DNA from: Lepidodermella squamata
Lineage: Eukaryota > Animalia > Gastrotricha
Length of the DNA stretch: 64,000 nucleotides
Direction of reading: 5' to 3'
NCBI GenBank assembly: GCA_047495785.1
Contig: JBLDXI010000054.1
Span: forward strand, 744,001 to 808,000
Shown here: positions 712 through 40,400 of the stretch, one piece after another
Layout of the letters: every line of letters starts with the position of its first letter
How positions within the stretch are numbered: the first letter of the stretch is position 1
The notes under the pieces: model-generated
What the model was told of the DNA's origin: nothing
What the model saw: the letters and a program-made list of their open reading frames with translations, nothing else
Database searches by the model: none
Translations under genes and position numbers: made by a program

Positions 712-1335
712 GACAGGACAAATAAGATGAGGGCGAATAAGGCAATTAACAGTCGGACCGTCGTCATTCGTCTTTCGGCTGCTTGGGTCGGTTATCAGCA
801 GGGTGCGATAGTGGATCCTGGAGCTGCCAGGGATGGAAAATTGCTTTTGCTGTATTTTCCAAAATGGCTAGTGATTTCAACCAAAACCAGCAAAGCGGGG
901 AAATTTCGAGAATTTTTTACTCTAAAAATTTAATACCTCTCAGAATTTATGAAACAGCCGGAATTTTCTTTTTTGTCGCGCACTGCTAGTAGGACAGTTC
1001 AGCAACGTCAAACGTTCTTTGGCAGTGGTATTTGAGCAGGAGACACTTCAGCGACCAGTCGCTATTAGCACTTAAGCAGGCAGCAATTCAGCAACTGCCA
1101 CTTTAGCAGGTGCGCCATGTACTATTCAGCAACCGACTCTACCCCAGAAGCACTGATTTTTTTTTTAGAAAAGTGGCAGCTGCTGTACTGATTTCTGCTG
1201 AAGTGCTAATAGCGACTGGCTGCTGAAGTGTCTCCTGCTCAAATATCACTGTCAATTGACGTTTCTAAACTTTCTTACAACCCTCTGGTCTGATCATTAA
1301 TTATCTTATTCTCCCTCGTCTTATTTGTCCTGTGT
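712..1335. mobile_element. Nested inverted-repeat (fold-back/MITE-like) structure
   Basis: Inner ~52 bp inverted repeat at 1021-1072 / 1201-1253 (ggcagtggtatttgagcaggagacacttcagc...), with internal ttcagcaac sub-repeats. Outer ~37 bp inverted repeat at 712-748 / 1297-1335 (acaggacaaataagatgagggcgaataagg). Confidence 0.6.
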
Positions 1336-1953
1336 TTTGCCCTTCGCGATGAAAATCGCGATGAAACTCGCGGTACGAACACTACCAAACACCAATAGAC
1401 GCATTTTTTGTGCCCTATTAGTAACCCTATACGCTGATAGTAGCCTGACTAATAGTAGCCCTATTAGTCTCCCTATTCTGACCCACAAACTAAGCAAATT
1501 TGCTATGGAGGCACACGAGGCGCAGTAGAGCAAGCCCGCTGCCATGTGCTTGGAGGTTCTTGGTTCAACTCTCCGCCGCTTTAAAGGTCAGCAAAAACCA
1601 GTTGCGTGTGCTGCTTGTCGGAGCCCGTTTGTCAACTTTGGCCGTTCTAGACCAGTAATAGTCGTCGAGCGCGAGCTGCTGTGGGAAGTCGCCATGCCAC
1701 TGAGCTGGAAAACTATCGGTTGTTCCGGCGATCGTGGAAAAAGAACCGCCAACAAAGCCAGGAGTCTGTCGGATGTTCTCGACTTTCTTTAGTCAGCGCG
1801 AGCCGTACTTGAAGGTTTAAATTTAAAATATCCTAGACCTGACACCTAGAAATCTTAATGTAGCTGTTTGAGCAAAAGTTCCTTGAACAAAGCATCAACG
1901 ATTTTTTTAATTCGATGAATCCATTCCAATTTATTTCCTTATCTTTTCTTTTT

Positions 1954-3301
1954 TTACAGTCCATTCACCTGAAGCTTTGCGAAAAAATTTCGCATTTGAT
2001 AAGTATCACTCGCGTCTGCCGCTGAGATAGACGTTACAACACTGAAATATACTGTGTTAACTATCAGGAAGACAGTGCAAGAAAAAATAACTAGGCCTAT
2101 ATCTAGCAATCTAGCTCGATTCAACTCGAGATGAATTCTATGCCTGCAATTTATAGTCAGGATGAATTGTTTCTTGAAGAATCTGGACGAAGAGTAGGCG
2201 GCTGTGAAAATTGCATAGATTGCGATGACTACAGCCATCAGCAAGTTCCATATTACGTAATAATGATAAGAAATTATCTGCGTTGTTCGAGGGCAAGTGT
2301 CCACTAGGCCTAAAACTAAAGTGAAAGCAAGTAAATTGTAGCCCATCAAGCAAGATCTTTCGACGCCCTCTGGTGGTAATATCATAGCAACGAGCTGAAC
2401 GAAAATCATTAGAAATACAGGAATGAAACAAGACGGAATGAACTGAGCGGAATTTCTTCTCAGATGGAAATGAAAAGCGACTGTATTGGAGCCGTTCCAG
2501 ATGGATTCTGATCCGTAGCTTTCAAGTGACCATGGCCCGATGTCGTCCACGAAAACTGAGGACGCTGTAAGAGAGGAGTAGCTGAGGTCGACGAACGTTT
2601 TTTCAGCTCCGTAGTACAGTTCGGATAGCAAAACGAAGCAGAGTTGCGAGTCGAATGGGAAAGCCTGCAAAATCGGATAAATTCATCAAAAAATCGAATT
2701 TCATAAGCAATACCCAGAAGTCCATAGGGCAGTAAACGTGGAAGTCTCCGCCGCTAGATAGTGAAGCTGTACCTTGTGGCAGCCAATCGTAACCACCTGG
2801 GTAGAGAATAACGTCATCTTCAAATTTTGAGATATGCTTCATATCCCCGGCTGAATTCAGCAGAAACAATTGAGGATGCCAGACTGTATCGTGGCGATAC
2901 AGGCACCAGGAAATGTTGCTTCTAGCGTCCAGGGATAGACCGCCTATGACTAGATCTGGCTGGAAAACGTCTCTGTGAGTACACGGGGCCGTGCTCCAAT
3001 ACATCTTTAATTGTCCAGAAAATGAGAATCTAAGGAAAATGATAAGGCTCAAAGACAGGATTGTTTCCCAAACCAACTTTTTAGAAGTTTCGTCCAAATC
3101 TAGCAATCGATAAGCTGATAGAAAGACCCATAGCTGAACTACGTCCGACTGCTGTTGAACAGGCCTGCTGCGAAAGCTCGCCATATAAGTACACCGTTTT
3201 GCTAACCATGTGCAGAATTCCTCTTCTGGCGCTGGAGTTCGCTGTAGTTGGCCTTCAACCAAACTTGGTAGCCACAGTAAAATTAAAAGCGACTTGAGCA
3301 T
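1954..3301 (-). CDS. Divergent Cys-loop (pentameric) ligand-gated ion channel subunit, copy 1 (~416 aa)
   Basis: Exons 3301-3078, 3029-2714, 2664-1954, with 48 and 49 nt GT-AG introns. Signal peptide, RPV motif, WHP motif, spliced Cys-loop CPMDFWAFPFDSQLC, pre-M1 LRR and four TM helices. Confidence 0.9.
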
Positions 3302-3684
3302 TAGAATGGCTATTTTATAAGTGTGGTCTTACTTAATCAAGAGGCTGTGTGCACATGAAGTCAAAAGTTATTTAAAACTGCCGGCGCACCAAATTTCAGC
3401 TTTCATCGTTCAGCTATTTCCTGTTTCATTTCCTGTATGCATTTCATATGTCCCCAATGCGAATTTTTTTCGTTTCATTCGCTTCCCCGGTGGACCGTGC
3501 GATAAAAATAGGTTTTAATTGACAGAAAAACTGTTTCTTGACATTTTGCATGAGAAACTTTCGGATAGTAGAATTTTCCTTTGTTACCTGATTAATTTGG
3601 CACCGATCTAGCCTTTCGTCATTACCAGAAAAAGGTAATGCCCCGCATTCTAGGTCAAAAAATGGAGCCTTTATTTCACAGAAA

Positions 3685-31400: not shown

Positions 31401-34400
31401 CCCTGAAATACTCCTTAATTCGGATCAGCCAAATACCGACAGTTATCGATTATCGATTATCGATAATCAGTGATTGCCGATTCCGATTCCGAGGGTGATT
31501 TATTCCTAGGGTGATTTATCGCATCGAAATTTCCAGGAATAATTGAAATTGGAGAGAAATCGCGATATTATTGATTATCGATTATCGATCGATTATCGAT
31601 TATCGATCGATAACCAATCGATAAAAATCAATGTCGTCCGATCAGTGAAAAATTTTATCGATATGAAGCCTAATTCGATTTCCGAACATTTTTGAGAATT
31701 TTCTAGTTCGACATTTTTTTACCCGAGATCAAGATTTATTGGCCATCAAGAAAACCCCTCTCCAAATTAGTTATTTCCGATTCTATCGATGAGTTTTCAA
31801 CATTTTTTAAAAATTTCGTGTTTTTTTTAGGCCCTGCCGGAACAGGCAAGACTGAAACTACCAAGGACATGGGCCGTTGCCTTGGCAAGTACGTCGTCGT
31901 ATTCAACTGCTCCGACCAGATGGACTTCCGCGGTCTCGGCCGCATCTACAAAGGCCTGGCGCAGTCCGGCTCGTGGGGCTGCTTCGACGAGTTCAACCGC
32001 ATCGACCTGCCCGTACTCTCCGTCGCTGCGCAGCAGATCGCCGTCGTGTTATCCTGCCGCAAAGAACGCCGCCGCCAGTTCGTATTCACAGACGGCGATA
32101 TCGTCGACATGAACCCGGAATTCGGAATTTTCTTGACCATGAACCCGGGCTACGCCGGGCGCCAGGAGCTGCCTGAAAATCTGAAGATCAACTTCAGAAC
32201 CGTGGCGATGATGGTGCCGGATCGGCAGATTATCATCCGTGTCAAGCTGGCCGCGTGTGGTTTCATCGAAAACGTGCCCCTTTCGCGTAAATTCTACGTG
32301 TTGTACAAGCTTTGCGAGGAGCAGCTCACCAAACAGGTGCATTACGATTTCGGTCTGCGGAATATTTTGTCGGTTTTGCGTACGCTCGGCTCGGTTAAAC
32401 GGTCGAACCCCAATGATCCGGAGCCGACGACTATGATGCGAGTGTTGCGTGACATGAACTTGTCCAAGCTTACCGATCAAGACGAGCCGCTTTTCATGTC
32501 GCTTATTGCTGATTTGTTCCCAGGTAAGAATTCTCTAATGATTTTCTACGCTTTTATGAATGAGATGTGAACATCGCATAGAGCTCCGAAAAAAGAAGAA
32601 TTCTCGATCGGCGCATCTCGATCTTTTTCAAATTCGTCAAATTTATTTGAACCTACATTTTTACTTGCCGCAGGTTTTCACCAGTTGAAGCTGCTAAAAG
32701 CATTTCATTTCCTATACTACAGCGTCTTCCATAAGTAAAGAAAGCGAAGAAAAGACACGGAAAAGGGTTCAGAAACTCTAAAATGACATCTCATGGCTAG
32801 AACAATTTTAGAAAAATTCCAAAAATCACTAGAATAGGAATCAAAAATGTCACTTGTTAATGGGACTAGGAGAAATTTGGAGAAATTTGATCTAACCGGG
32901 TGAAATACCGAAAATTACCGAACCTGTTACCATCGGGGTTTTCCGGGTATTCTCTGGTAAATTTTTTATTTCTTCGGTTAAATCGCAGATAAAAGATGGA
33001 ATAGGTTTAATTTAATAAAAAATAGTTGAATTTTCTACGAAAAATGACCTTAACAAAAATAAAAAATAGACTTGCTGTATTTCATTAAATAAATCTCGAG
33101 AAAAATACCGATGAGAATGGTTGGGTAATTATTCGTATTATTTCATATTTCGATTTAACTTATTTAACTTCTTTTGAATTTTCTCCGCTTTACCTACTTT
33201 TGAGACTTCAGCAATTTCAACAAGTTTTTCAAAAAAAATATGACAATTATTTCAATTCAAATTAGTTGGGTCTTTCAATCGGAAATTTTCGCGGATTGGA
33301 AAGTCCTCCATCGATCTAAAATTTAAAATATTAATTTCCTACTAAGACTAAGTATTGTCGAGTTCGAGCGTTGCAGAATCATCATAAATTGCCAAATTTT
33401 GAGTTTTTCAGGTTTTTTAATTTTGAAATTGCTGTCTCTTTTCATTTTACTTCAGTATTGAAAAATGTGACTTCATGGGAGACCTAATTTAAATATTCAT
33501 AATTTCACTGTCACACGTCAACTTTTTCTCTTCAAAAATATTTTCTAGACAGCATTTTTGAGCATTTTTCCATCGAAAATTGGTCTTGAAACCCAATCAT
33601 GTCGTTTGAAATTTCGTTTAAGTTTTGTGAAGTGTGAAGATCACCATTCACACTAGTTTGGTTAGCCATTTTCCAAACTCTGAGCTCACTTCAGCCTTTC
33701 GAATTTTTCGATTTCCCTAGAAAAAAGGGAATTTCTAAGAAAAACGGTATTTCTAGAGAATAAGGGATGGAAAATAGGCAATCAAAGTGTTGGTCTTGGC
33801 CTAAGGCCTAAGCCTCAAGCTGGGTTAGAAACATGTAAATTTCCCACTTTTAATGACGTTTCAAGTCCGTTGACGATGCAGCTGCTTCTTCACAAAATAT
33901 TGAACAATCAGAAAAATTCAGTCGAATTGGTAAAATATCGATTTATCGGTTTTTTTCCAAATTTTTCAAAATTTCAAAATTTCAAAATATCATTTTATCG
34001 AATTTTACCTTCAATTAAATTGCAAAAAAATTGAATCGCATTTTAATGAGCGTGTTGAGATTTGAAAACCTCGCAATTTTCATTTTAAAAATTCATTTCA
34101 TTTATTCAAAAATTGTCTTTAAAACTGGGAATTGAAACGAGGTGTTTGACCTTCCGAATTTCCGAATTTTTCCAGCTGAAATTTTTGAGAATTTATTAAA
34201 TTTTTTATTTATTATAGGCATCGTTTTGGACAAGGCCGGTTATCCGCAACTCGAGGCCGCGCTCGACAAGAACATCCTGGACGCGAAACTCGTCATCCAC
34301 CCGGCGTGGAAACTCAAATGCATCCAACTCTTCGAAACACAACGCGTCCGCCACGGCATGATGACGCTGGGCCCGTCCGGCGCCGGCAAAACCTGCTGCA

Positions 34401-37400
34401 TCCACGCGCTCATGAAAGCCATGTCGGACTGCGGCGACCCGCACCGCGAGTGGCGCATGAACCCGAAAGCCATCACGGCGCCGCAGATGTTCGGCCGCCT
34501 CGACGTCGCGACCAACGACTGGACGGACGGCATTTTCTCAACGCTATGGCGCCGCTCGCTGAAACTCAAGAAAAACGAACACGTCTGGATCATCCTCGAC
34601 GGCCCGGTCGACGCGATTTGGATTGAAAATCTCAACTCAGTCCTGGACGATAACAAAACGCTGACCCTAGCTAACGGCGATCGAATCCCGATGGCGCCGA
34701 ATTGTAAACTGGTATTCGAGGTCCATAACATCGATAACGCATCTCCTGCGACTGTGTCAAGAAACGGCATGGTTTTCATGTCCAGCTCCGTCCTGGACTG
34801 GAACCCGATCTTAGAGGGCTGGTTGAATAACCGGCCGCCTCACGATCGCGACCCGATTATGAACATGTTTTCGGCCTCGTTCCCGCATATCTACCGATTC
34901 GCGACGCAGAGTTTGGTGTTCAAAATGGAGGTGCTCGAGGCGTTTGTTGTCAATCAAGCGTGTAATTTGATGGAGGGCCTCATCCCGAGGCGTGAGGCGA
35001 AGGAGGGTCCGTTGCCTCGCGACCAATTGGCGAAAATCTACGTTTTTGTTATCATGTGGTCGATTGGTGCGTTTTTGGAGCTGGACGATCGCGCGAAGTT
35101 GCAGCAGTACATGATGACGACGACCGATTTCCCCAAGTTGGACTTGCCGAATATGGAGGGCTCGGGTGAGGATCAGACGATTTTCGACTATTTGGTCGAT
35201 GAGTCGGGCACGTGGCAGCACTGGAACACGCGCGTTCAGGAGTACATGTACCCGCCGGATTCGTCGCCGGAATACGCCAGTATTTTGGTGCCTAACGTCG
35301 ATAACGTGAGAGCCGAGTTTTTGATCGACACGATCGCTCGCCAGGGTAAGCCTATATTTCAATACTCTGAGCTTTGAAATTTCAAAATTAATTAAATTAA
35401 ATTCGATACAATTTCGAAGGATTTTTTAGCCGTTTATGTAATTTACGAAATTTTTTGACAATGATAGTCCGCTTTTGAAACTGAGTAAGACTCATCTCAA
35501 TTAGAAGGCTGGGATAACTTGGACTTGTCAAATTTGCTAGCAAAATCAGGGTCTTTCCCTATTTTCATAAAAAGTTTGATGTAAGGTTCGGGACCTTTTA
35601 GGTTTCCTGAGCTTTCCAATCCTATTAAGGGAAATTTGACAAGTCCAAGTTATCAGACTAGCGAGTATTTTACATAACAAATTTTCTAGAAAAAAAATTA
35701 GAAAATATCAAAACAAATGGGAGCATGAGAAACTGGAAAATTCCAGTGTAAAAATCGTTCTACTGCTTGGAATAAATGAAATTCCCCTGTCAATTCGATT
35801 AAATGTTTGGCCCTTGAAAATTCAACCAAAGCTTAATCACTTTATCAATATCTATAAAATTATTAATTCATTAATTCATAAAATAAACCATTATAAAATT
35901 TGTGATTTTTTATCGGTTCAAAAAATTTGGAAACTTTCGATTTCTAGATATTTCAGGCAACAATATTTGGAAGAATTATATAACTAAATACCAAATTTTA
36001 AGAAGGCCGGTTATTTTACCAATTTAATAATGGGATTGGGGGCTTTTGAGTCGGTTTGTTCCAAGCATTTTTAATTGTGTTTTTCAGGTTTTTTGAAATT
36101 TTCAAAAATTCAGTGACTCGTTTCCTTAAAAAATAGGCTCATTTCTATGCAAAAGAACCCAACACCTATAAAAGTAGAACTCTGGTGAAAAATTTGTGAA
36201 ATCTGATTTTTTAATTTTTTGAAATTTACGGGAAGTAAGGCGTTTATTGAATTGGCATGCAATTAATTCTCAATGTCTCAAATCGTCCATTCTAATTCCC
36301 TCGTTTTTTGAACCTCAGCCTCGCAGATTTTCAAATGTTCGAAAAATAAGAACAAACTGGGACAATTTTGCGAGACATAATTTGAATGTTGCTTCGATTG
36401 CAAATAAATTGTCAAAATTTCAAAAATGTTCTTAAAATTGGGAAAAAATCTCATTTTTTGAACAATTTCATCATTTTGAATAATATTTTATTCAATGAAA
36501 ATTTTCAATTTTGAATAAATTTTCTATCAAAATTTGCCTCTTTAACTGGGAATTCGCGTTATTTTTCTCATAATTTTACTTTAATGTTAAATAGGTAAGG
36601 CTATGCTGCTGATCGGTGAGCAGGGTACGGCCAAGACCGTAATGATAAACGGCTACACGGGCAAGTACAACCCGGAAAACCAGCTCGCCAAGTCCTTCAA
36701 CTTCTCATCGGCCACCACGCCGAACATGTTCCAACGCGTTTTCGAATCGTGGGTGGAAAAGCGCGTCGGCACCAAGTACGGCCCGCCGGCCGGCAAGAAG
36801 ATGACCGTGTTCATCGACGACATCAACATGCCGATCATCAACGAGTGGGGCGACCAGATCGCCAACGAAATCGTGCGCCAGTTGATGGAAAACCAGGGCT
36901 TCTATTCGATCGACAAGCCGGGTGAATTCACGACCATTGTCGATGTTCAATTCCTCGCGGCTATGATCCAGCCGGGCGGTGGCCGAAATGACATCCCGCA
37001 GCGGTTGAAGCGGCAGTTTACCATTATCAACTGCACGCTGCCGTCGAATCCGTCTATCGATAAGATTTTCCGCGTTATTGGATGCGGCCATTATTGCGCT
37101 CAGCGCGGCTTTAAGGACGATGTGAGGGATATGGTGTCGCGGCTGGTGCCGTTGACTCGCCGCTTGTGGCAGTTGACCAAGGTGAAGATGCTGCCGACGC
37201 CGGCCAAATTCCACTACGTGTTCAACTTGCGAGATTTGAGCCGCATCTGGCAGGGCATGATCAACACGATCAGCTCGACGGTCACGTCCATTGAGATTTT
37301 GGTCGCGTTGTGGAAGCACGAGTGCACCCGTGTCATCGCTGATCGGTGAGTTCTAACATAAAATTATGGCATTTTTTCAATATTCAATATTCAAAATTTT

Positions 37401-40400
37401 GAATTGAAAAAAATACGATCAAAAATTGAAAATTTTAATTCGAAAAATTTGAAATTCAAAATTGGAAAATTGAAAAAACCCGAAAAATTGAATTTCGACT
37501 TGACTTATTTCGTAAAATCAAAAGTGAATATTTGGTTAATTATTTCAAACTTTGAATAGGCCGTTCGCTACGATAGGTATTGATAATTCTTCGATAAAAT
37601 GCGATTATCGATCAAATTTTAAATTTTATATTGATTCGGGATATTAATGGTTTGGTCGGCGTGAAATGATGAACTCCTGAACAATTAGAAATTGAAAAAT
37701 CCATCCGAACCGCAAATATTTTCAAAAATTTGTCTTTCGTTGAACTTATTCGAAAATTTCTATAAAAAAAATTAGGTTTCCATAAATACTGAATTTTTGG
37801 TTTCAGAATTTTCCGAGTTTTGCGTTTTATCACGGGTCTCAATTTTATTGTCAAGTCTAATGGACAAATCTCATTATTGAAGTGTATTTTTGCGATATTG
37901 GTGGTCATATTACAAGTCCGCAGAGCCGATATCGATTTTTAATATCGATTTCACAAATCAGTGATTTTTCCGATATCAGCAGTTTGAGAAGCCACGGTGA
38001 CATCTTCTACATAATTGGTGACTAATGGACAAATAAATTTGAATTTAGAATTTAGCATTTAGAGGGTAAGCAGGTGGATGAAATGCAGAAAAATCCTAAA
38101 TGTTTAAGAGCGTCGCTATCGATAAAGGAAATCAATAAAGGAAGTCGATCAGTTCGAAATCGCGAAATTCTGGGAACATATAGTACCGGAATCTCAATTT
38201 TAGGGTTGGAAGTATTTAAATTGAAATTGTTTGAATTTGATTCCTATGATTTTCTCGACTGTTCCATTTCAATCTCTCTCGCTTTTTATTGCCTCTGAAA
38301 GTTCCCTGATCGTGTGAAAGGAAAAAATGGGACAGTTCTGGTACAATAATTCTCTATCTTTTCCCCTGATTTGAGCCTTCTTACTTCTTACAGTAGCAGA
38401 TGAGATGAGATGAGCTAAATTAATGGTTTATGCAACCCGTGAAAATTAGGTTCGTGTCGAGGGATGACATTGAGTATTACGACAAAGCCGCTCGCCGGCT
38501 GATCGTTGAAGAATTCGACGCCGAAATGGGCCTCGTCTACGACGACACAAAGTGGTTCTGCGACTTCATGAGGTCGAGTTGCGTGAACCCCAACACCGGT
38601 GAACCCGCCGAGTACGATAATTAAGCACTCGAAAATTTTTTTGTCGCATGCAATTTCAGTTGTTTAACCATTTTTGGCGTATGCTATAGCGATTTGATTG
38701 CAATGCATCCAAAATTTGATTTTGAGTTGAATTTTTGTTGTGAGTTTTATTTCGTTTATTTATTATTTATTTATCCAACCCATTTCAAGTTTCACGACCT
38801 ACGACGATGGCACTTGGTTTGAGAAGACCCTGAAGCGTCTGATCACCGAAGAACTCGGCGACCAGTACGGGCCGATGGTCGACGATAACAAGTGGTTTGT
38901 CGACTTCCTCCGGTAAGTCACCCCCTTCATATTTTTAGTTTCGTCTCGCCTTTCGCTTCTCCGCTTTTCTTATTTTTTTCGTTATTTTTTTCGAATGTTT
39001 TGGATTTTTTACCAATAATTTTTTCATTACAGAGATGCTCCTGAGGCAACTGGTGAGGAAACTGACGAGTCAGCTTTGGATACGCCGAAAATTTACGAAC
39101 CTGTGAGTCACGAAAAAATTTGAAAATTAAAATTTCTCAAATTAGATTAAATTATATTTTTTTATCAATTTCCGTGATTTTTTTTTAAATTTCCCAATTT
39201 TCTGGAAGTTCAGAATAAATAGTCTAAACAACTTGAGACGATGCAAAATTCAAATTTTTATCATAGTTTTTCCTTAATTTTTTAAATAAAATTACCACCT
39301 GTGAAGTCTGGCTATAAAAATTCGAATGAATGCTGAATGCTGAAATTTTATAAATTATTTTTAATATTCCATTACATTTCGATTTAGATCCCGTCGTTCG
39401 AGGCGCTTGAGGAGCGGCTCAAGTTCTTCATGAGCCAGTACAACGAGTTCGTGCGAGGCGCCAACATGGACCTCGTCTTCTTCAAGGACGCCATGACTCA
39501 CCTGGTGAAAGTCTCGCGAGTCATCCGCACCCCGCGAGGCCACTGCCTCCTGGTCGGTGTCGGCGGCTCCGGCAAGCAGTCGCTCACCCGGCTGGCGTCT
39601 TTCATCGCCGGGTACCAGTCGTTCCAGATCACCCTGACCCGCGCCTACAGCCAGAACAACTTCCTGGAAGATTTGAAAAATCTCTACCGAACTGCCGGCC
39701 AACAGGGCAAGGGCATCACGTTCATTTTCACGGATCAGGAAATTAAGGATGAGGGCTTTTTGGAGTACTTGAACAACGTACTCGCCTCGGGTATTGTCGC
39801 TGGTCTGTTCGCGCGTGACGAGACGGATGAGATCTTGCAAGACCTCATCGCCCCGATGAAGAAGGAATTCCCACGTCGCCCGCCAACGAACGAAAATTTG
39901 AACGAGTATTTCCTGTCTCGAACTCGCAAAAATTTGGTAAGCCAGACTTGGTTTTAAATTTTTTAAATTTTAATTTTCAAAATTTCAAAATTTTAATTTT
40001 TTTAAATTTCATCTATTTGAGAAGAAATTAATTTTTCATGATTTTTGTTTGTTTTATTTTTTAGCACATTGCTCTGTGCTTTTCGCCTGTGGGTGAGAAA
40101 TTCCGGGGCCGTGCGTTGAAATTCCCGGGTCTCATCTCCGGCTGTACGATGGACTGGTTCCAGCGCTGGCCGCGTGATGCGTTGATCGCCGTCGCCGATC
40201 GTTTCCTCACTGCTTTCGACATGGAATGCACGCCGGTTGTCAAACGCGAAGTCGTTCATGCTATGGGCTCATTCCACGTAAGTCGAATATCAAGCCATTT
40301 ATTGTTAATTTCACGTTATTCCTCAAGGTATTAGTTAAAAAAATCGCATGTTTTTTGTCTGATTTTCTGAATTTTTCATTCGCAAAAAATAGAATTTCTG

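Follow-up and report, generated by a model that had tools for sequence, protein, structure and literature searches.

Organization of the locus

The window analysed here, a stretch of 64,000 nucleotides from Lepidodermella squamata, carries a dynein heavy chain gene with a tandem exon duplication in its motor region. The two homologous exons, A and B, are separated by a short intron and embedded between constitutive exons (Table 1). Inspection of the sequence and its translation indicates that each copy is preceded by ag and followed by gt, that each finishes an Arg codon at its start, and that each ends with two bases of a further Arg codon, whose last base is the A at 39033. The copies align without gaps, with 66 of 123 bases and 19 of 42 residues identical, and in tblastn searches against the window they find each other at an E-value of about 1e-10; the same searches of the whole window with either exon returned no third copy. 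The tandem exon duplication is real, and the original prediction of two 123-nt phase 2-2 exons lying 217 nt apart between the AAA3 and AAA4 P-loops, with about half of their residues different, agrees with the coordinates, splice dinucleotides and translations obtained here. The exon following B had to be corrected with respect to an earlier account, and spans 39033–39102 with the donor CCT/gtgagt.

Table 1. Features of the exon pair and its surroundings, and paired exons at the loci of other animals. Positions are those of the window unless a scaffold or contig is named; a slash marks the exon–intron boundary.
Feature	Position	Strand	Remarks
Constitutive upstream exon	36595–37345	+	AAA3 P-loop GEQGTAKT at 36615–36638; start of the AAA3 lid
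3' end of upstream exon	37345	+	CG of a split Arg codon; donor TCG/gtgagt
Intron preceding exon A	37346–38449	+	1104 nt, GC 0.31
High-copy dispersed repeat in this intron	about 37840–38207		
Exon A (FC-type, derived)	38450–38572	+	123 nt, phase 2-2, GC 0.53, GC3 0.75
Splice signals of exon A			Weak acceptor, pyrimidine fraction 0.41; very weak donor GAG/gtcgag
Possible 3' extension of exon A	38573–38611	+	Open in frame; alternative donor CGA/gtacga at 38611/38612
A–B intron	38573–38789	+	217 nt
Exon B (canonical)	38790–38912	+	123 nt, phase 2-2, GC 0.54, GC3 0.80
Splice signals of exon B			Acceptor caag/T; strong donor CCG/gtaagt
Intron following exon B	38913–39032	+	120 nt
Constitutive downstream exon	39033–39102	+	Acidic AAA3-to-AAA4 connector, ends PKIYEP
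Exon carrying the AAA4 P-loop	39388–39936	+	GVGGSGKQS at 39556–39582
L002/L003, environmental scaffolds	3112–3234; 3533–3658		Canonical-like exon of 123 nt, then derived exon of 126 nt
L085, Logan contig	710–832; 1231–1467		Canonical-like exon of 123 nt, then derived exon of 237 nt with His/Ser-rich insert
L005 and L008/L011/L015, rotifer-type			More derived exon of 123 nt, then canonical exon of 123 nt 85–100 nt downstream
L038, another lineage			Derived exon of 123 nt, then canonical exon of 123 nt 607 nt downstream

Identity of the dynein and the segment encoded by the exon pair

The P-loops start at 31830 (AAA1), 34370 (AAA2), 36615 (AAA3) and 39556 (AAA4), which gives the motor order AAA1–AAA4. 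Among all dynein chains of the PDB, the flanking exon best matches human DNAH5 (residues 2752–2832, E-value 1.5e-36), followed by a 4730-residue chain in entry 9fqr (1.4e-27), the remaining dynein classes giving values of 1e-15 or weaker; exon B aligns with residues 2834–2875 of human DNAH5. Judged from these comparisons, the gene is an outer-arm axonemal dynein heavy chain of the DNAH5 type (DNAH5/DNAH8, Chlamydomonas gamma).

The Pfam domains AAA_7, AAA_lid_1 and AAA_8 were detected on the fragments of relatives, and locate the segment within the final third of the AAA3 lid (AAA_lid_1), before the D4 module. An AlphaFold model of the fragment of one relative, calculated with a 36-sequence alignment as input, has pLDDT values of 82–97 across most of the alternative-exon segment, dropping to 68 at the strand. 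The model consists here of two helices, of 19 and 7 residues, and of the strand FVDFLR, which pairs with the strand PKIYE of the next exon, the acidic loop between these two strands being modelled at low confidence. According to this model, the alternative exon encodes the final helix pair and β-strand of the AAA3 lid, and the chain runs from the PKIYE strand on into AAA4.

In this segment, orthologous sequences from many animals, about 130 in all, conform to the pattern RF..[DE]D..WF.K...(8)...E.LG...(12)...[YW]FVDFLR. Exon B fits this pattern, with a profile score of 61.7 bits. Exon A departs from it by the changes of WF to YY, LG to FD and FV to FC, the nearly invariant Trp-Phe and Leu-Gly pairs being lost, and when searched alone it matched no PDB dynein. 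By its sequence, B is the canonical form and A the derived one.

Coding constraint on exon A

Exon A is free of stop codons despite 57 base differences from B among 123 positions, and its third codon positions are nearly as GC-rich as those of B (Table 1), compared with a GC content of 0.31–0.35 in the surrounding introns. The neutral decay of exon B was simulated in 20,000 runs with intron base frequencies and up to 57 differences. The simulated sequences stayed stop-free in 9% of the runs, reached a GC3 of at least 0.75 in 0.03% (P 3e-4) and kept at least 19 of 42 residues identical in 0.02% (P 2e-4). Scored against a profile of 132 orthologous exons, exon A reaches 27.4 bits, a value attained by none of 500 neutral simulations (average −1.3 bits, maximum 15). 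Between A and B, dN/dS is about 0.26 with dS saturated (pN 0.40, pS 0.71). We argue from these values that exon A is no product of neutral decay and that it was maintained as a coding sequence through most of its history.

A second haplotype or strain is represented in the DNA run X2, whose difference table, restricted to the best-supported differences, lists two within exon A, at 38507 and 38543, both synonymous third-position changes by codon reading. The flanking introns are rich in substitutions and indels in the same data, with about eleven in the 120-nt intron following B. As two synonymous differences out of two have a chance probability of about 0.04, the haplotype evidence is only suggestive. 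To judge by its coding signature, exon A codes for protein or did so until very recently.

Exon pairs in related animals

Contigs of relatives encoding the neighbouring exon were scanned for copies of the duplicated exon. Tandem pairs were found in the two closest relatives (L002 and L085), in rotifer-type contigs and in L038, which constitutes the new result of this comparison (Table 1). The assignment to rotifers, of bdelloid type, is based on a close protein labelled Rotaria by one source. All paired exons in relatives have an open frame, a length divisible by three, phase 2-2 and ag/gt flanks. In the tree of the flanking exon every paired locus falls into a single well-supported clade (96/96), and the window is sister to L002 and L085 (80/86). 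The original prediction had named the decay of exon A in relatives among the points that would refute it; frames and splice sites are intact in the pairs of L002, L085, L005, L008 and L038, and such equivalent pairs match what would be expected of mutually exclusive exons.

When two rotifer lineages are compared, the extra exon has a pN of 0.26 versus a pS of 0.78 (binomial p 4e-4), and the canonical exon a pN of 0.07 versus a pS of 0.57. Copies are also broken or lost: the extra exon of the rotifer L009 carries a 13-nt frame-shifting deletion, L006 and L014 are without an extra exon, and L007 and L012/L013 have lost the intron entirely. L001 and L086 gave no pair information, the region not being covered or the intron being too long.

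Exon A shares with the second exons (e2) of L002 and L085 the replacement of Val38 by Cys in FVDFLR, which requires two base substitutions, as well as the loss of the helix-capping Gly24. These shared states point to a common "FC-type" alternative exon, which would be older than the split of these three animals. In the window the FC-type exon precedes the canonical one, whereas in L002 and L085 it follows it; this reversed order could be explained either by a three-exon intermediate followed by differential loss, or by independent duplications with convergence. All exon-copy phylogenies are based on 42 columns: one tree joined A with L002 e2 (94/87), and a larger maximum-likelihood tree collapsed. 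In seven AU tests on these columns the FC clade, the grouping of A with B and positional orthology all obtained p > 0.07, and the slightly better likelihood found when A, L002 e2 and L085 e2 are held together comes with none of the alternatives rejected.

Splice signals and possible modes of exclusion

Fourteen donors and 14 acceptors of the gene were mapped by spliced alignment to the proteins of relatives and scored on a matrix of their own. The mapped donors have the form GT[A/G]A.., once GTCAGT, and score 7.9–11.6 bits. At −1.65 bits the donor of exon A lies far outside this range. Its sequence GTCGAGT is a perfect GTGAGT plus one extra C at 38575, which may represent recent damage or may be tolerated by pairing with U1 with the C at +3 bulged. 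A small fraction of human donors use one-nucleotide bulge registers, that at +3 included (PMC4856993). At the homologous position, the FC-type exons of L002 and L085 have ordinary-looking donors (gtagtt and gtatca, respectively).

Two further donors are found close to exon A. The in-frame CGA/gtacga at 38611/38612 scores 1.33 bits and would add 13 residues, giving a 162-nt exon; by hand count, 10 of the 13 third positions in the 39 bases concerned (38573–38611) are G or C, too few codons to weigh. The out-of-frame CCG/gtgaac at 38598/38599, with 7.2 bits the best donor near exon A, would give a 149-nt exon. The acceptors of A and B score 1.6 and −1.4 bits, respectively, versus 6.1–13.8 for the other acceptors, on a matrix built from 14 sites only; weak acceptors on both exons fit competing, regulated exons. 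The 53 GC-rich bases after exon A could be a remnant of the next exon, but the resemblance (P.TGE.) is too short to carry weight, and 4.7% of intron windows are equally GC-rich.

None of the known mechanisms of exclusivity (short intron, frame shift with decay, incompatible spliceosomes, competing RNA stems) was found at the locus. Exclusion by a short intron is not supported: introns of 56 and 62 nt are spliced in this gene, and the A–B intron of 217 nt is therefore long enough for splicing. Both exons being multiples of three in length, their joint inclusion or joint skipping would keep the frame. All splice ends of the pair are GT-AG, so incompatible spliceosomes are not indicated. Concerning competing RNA stems, an inverted-repeat scan yielded only AT-rich low-complexity pairs, RNAduplex scans of the three introns gave intron–intron pairings no better than those of shuffles, and the fold or hairpin around the donor of exon A has a z-score of −1.3.

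Transcript and protein evidence

Reads were available from X1, a probable RNA run of 118 M letters, in addition to the DNA run X2. The X1 contigs are confined to exons apart from a repeat, and of these one falls on exon B, whereas exon A has none; as the cover of X1 is very thin, several constitutive exons being bare, the absence over exon A means little. No exon–exon junctions are listed in X2 or in the thinly covering X1. With the upstream exon as query, the best match in the protein collections is 78% identical, too low for the species to be represented there. The open frame through exon A gave no candidates in these collections, which for an absent species says nothing on expression. A rotifer fragment used as query retrieved canonical forms only, in a search whose length filter would exclude long transcripts. 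As a separate observation, an exhaustive search of representative proteins returned full-length dyneins, most of them from protists or very distant, the top match being P0217, a protein of the length of human DNAH5.

Interpretation of the exon pair

With moderate confidence, we regard A and B as probably a conserved pair of mutually exclusive exons, of which A would be a minor or regulated form. Each mRNA would take either A or B, so that the C-terminal third of the AAA3 lid would exist in two versions, with B as the default; the weak splice sites of A suggest that it may be used rarely or only in particular cells. Its donor may work via the U1 register with the +3 C bulged, or the exon may extend 39 nt further, to 38611. 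The duplication, the long coding constraint on A and the pairs in relatives lead us to infer that A is included in present-day transcripts and that its use excludes B. The original prediction of mutually exclusive exons is partly supported, while a donor of exon A so far outside the range of the gene speaks against a working switch. Since related animals carry similar pairs, the gene probably makes two versions of its motor.

The same donor lends itself to another explanation. Exon A may be a recently disabled relic, in which a one-base insertion changed GTGAGT into GTCGAGT and which is now skipped, its decay having just begun. A donor one extra C from a perfect site, scoring −1.65 bits where the others score 7.9–11.6, is what such an event would leave behind, the lack of X1 contigs on the exon agrees with it, and relatives do lose or break copies, as seen for L009 (frame-shifted) and for L006 and L014 (single exon). 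The frame, GC3 and profile score of exon A are nevertheless intact, both listed haplotype differences are synonymous, and +3 bulge registers do function in some human donors, so that we consider a relic rather unlikely, although its chance is substantial and it is the main alternative. The donor at 38598/38599 is close to the normal range of the gene and by far the best nearby; exon A might thus be included as a 149-nt poison exon whose frame shift lowers dynein output. A poison exon needs no constraint at the protein level, yet exon A keeps the lid-domain profile and the codon bias, and in relatives the corresponding exons stop precisely at the homologous in-frame donor, which makes this explanation improbable.

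Joint inclusion of A and B, which would leave the frame intact, or read-through from exon A into a truncated heavy chain, appears more improbable still. The segment is present as a single copy in all of the about 130 orthologous sequences, and, in the structural model, doubling the helix pair would disturb the AAA3 lid. As for read-through, the frame does stay open for 17 codons past exon A, and the tail described in the original prediction (16 protein letters, not shown here) was recovered, followed by TAA at 38622–38624; the product would be without AAA4–AAA6, and the truncated isoform proposed on this basis is unsupported.

If A and B are mutually exclusive exons, their exchange may alter AAA3 gating or the contacts between stacked heads. 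The ATP site of AAA3 is regulatory and gates the main one. A broader proposal, which we put forward tentatively as possible but not the likelier case, is that of an old AAA3-lid switch shared by the clade, in which gastrotrich-like animals would keep the FC-type exon, rotifers and another lineage would have analogous pairs, and each gene would give two outer-arm motors. Such motors would differ in AAA3 gating or in head-to-head contacts and could serve different cilia, for example locomotory versus excretory or sensory ones; cilium-type-specific motors made by splicing, as envisaged in the original prediction, are pure conjecture. In the outer-arm array of Tetrahymena, AAA3 small domains help to form the grooves that hold the linker of the neighbouring heavy chain (bioRxiv 10.1101/2020.12.08.415687), which is only a functional lead because the grooves described are on other heavy chains.

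Comparison with known systems

Dynein heavy chains are usually viewed as following the rule of one gene, one motor, and the diversity of ciliary motors is ascribed to gene duplication. Examples of a division of labour established in this way are DNAH5 (cilia) and DNAH8 (sperm) in vertebrates, and CG9492 and kl-5 in Drosophila. The present pair resembles DNAH5/DNAH8 in providing two versions of one outer-arm heavy chain, and DNAH5 and the DNAH8-length chain in 9fqr differ strongly in the very same 42-residue segment. In both of these systems, however, the whole gene has been duplicated, whereas the exon pair would swap only 41 codons. The sperm of this chaetonotid gastrotrich is not known to have flagella, and if it lacks them the analogy of cilia versus sperm would not transfer directly.

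Mutually exclusive exons born by tandem exon duplication are exemplified by the muscle myosin heavy chain gene Mhc of Drosophila. As in clusters of the Mhc type, the dynein exons are adjacent, homologous, equal in length and phase, and encode the same piece of a motor domain, one of them being conservative and the other derived. Unlike such clusters, the dynein pair is predicted from the genome, comes with no exclusivity mechanism that could be found, and has an abnormally weak donor on its derived member. The pair is a probable addition to the known class of tandem-duplicated mutually exclusive exons. If it is what we propose, an exchangeable AAA3-lid module would represent a natural experiment on which 41 residues can retune an outer-arm motor, and its small size makes it suitable for a swap test with recombinant motors. 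That such pairs recur among several lineages of small invertebrates suggests a solution reached repeatedly. Should exon A be dead, the locus would instead show how such switches get lost.

Alternative motor-domain forms are described for some dynein genes (Kollmar, PMC5100056), and our literature searches found no described case of such an exon pair for an axonemal outer-arm dynein. The closest counterpart is the predicted mutually exclusive motor-domain exon of the cytoplasmic dynein DHC1 of Schistosoma mansoni (Pillmann et al. 2011, PMC3228551; also Kollmar 2016, PMC5100056). Both cases concern a duplicated exon of a dynein heavy chain, predicted from the genome, the copies having the same length and a split codon at either end. 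Whereas the flatworm gene encodes a cytoplasmic dynein, the present pair belongs to an axonemal outer-arm dynein, falls in the AAA3 lid and recurs in several lineages.

Fate of the alternative exon in related gene copies

Among the rotifer-type copies of this dynein gene, the extra exon, counterpart of the derived alternative copy, is intact in some and broken or missing in others (Table). In L009 a deletion of 13 nt has taken out the Trp-Phe codons and disrupted it; L006 and L014 are without it, and in L007 and L012/L013 the flanking intron itself is missing. This pattern suggests that duplicated copies of the gene have undergone differential loss. In L085, the locus of one close relative, the derived exon carries a His/Ser-rich insert of approximately 38 residues, located in the loop that joins the helices to the final strand; it is nonetheless open and in phase.

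Table. Positions of the features discussed
Feature	Sequence	Positions	Length
Broken extra exon	L009	1188-1313	
Derived exon	L085	1231-1467	237 nt
Dispersed repeat	window	37840-38207	
Loose ends within the repeat, run X1	window	37920-37994	
Bases directly 3' of exon A	window	38573-38625	53 bases
TAA ending the exon A frame	window	38622	
Region compared with X2 contigs	window	36600-41500	

Sequences flanking exon A

The bases directly 3' of exon A have an exon-like GC content of 0.55, a richness matched by 4.7% of intron windows. The frame of exon A remains open through them as far as the TAA, and their translation bears a faint likeness (P.TGE.) to the beginning of the exon that follows. This stretch may be what is left of a larger segment that was duplicated, or it may be a true 3' extension of exon A.

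The intron upstream of exon A holds a very high-copy dispersed repeat, over which the summed contig depth in the DNA run X2 is about 31,700 vs. about 100 around it. The repeat is also found, with many loose ends, in the probable RNA run X1.

A probable second haplotype or strain and a PDB annotation

The contigs of X2 are of two sorts, one identical to the window and one differing by about 2.5% in exons. These differences lie almost exclusively at third codon positions. The two sorts of contig point to the presence of a second, well-diverged haplotype or strain, which could serve as a resource for genome-wide selection tests.

PDB 9fqr chain I3 (4730 residues) ranks second among the matches to the dynein exon and has 'Cilia and flagella associated protein 57' as its molecule name. 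Judged from its length and similarity, this chain is a DNAH8-type heavy chain, and the name therefore looks misassigned in the sequence file.
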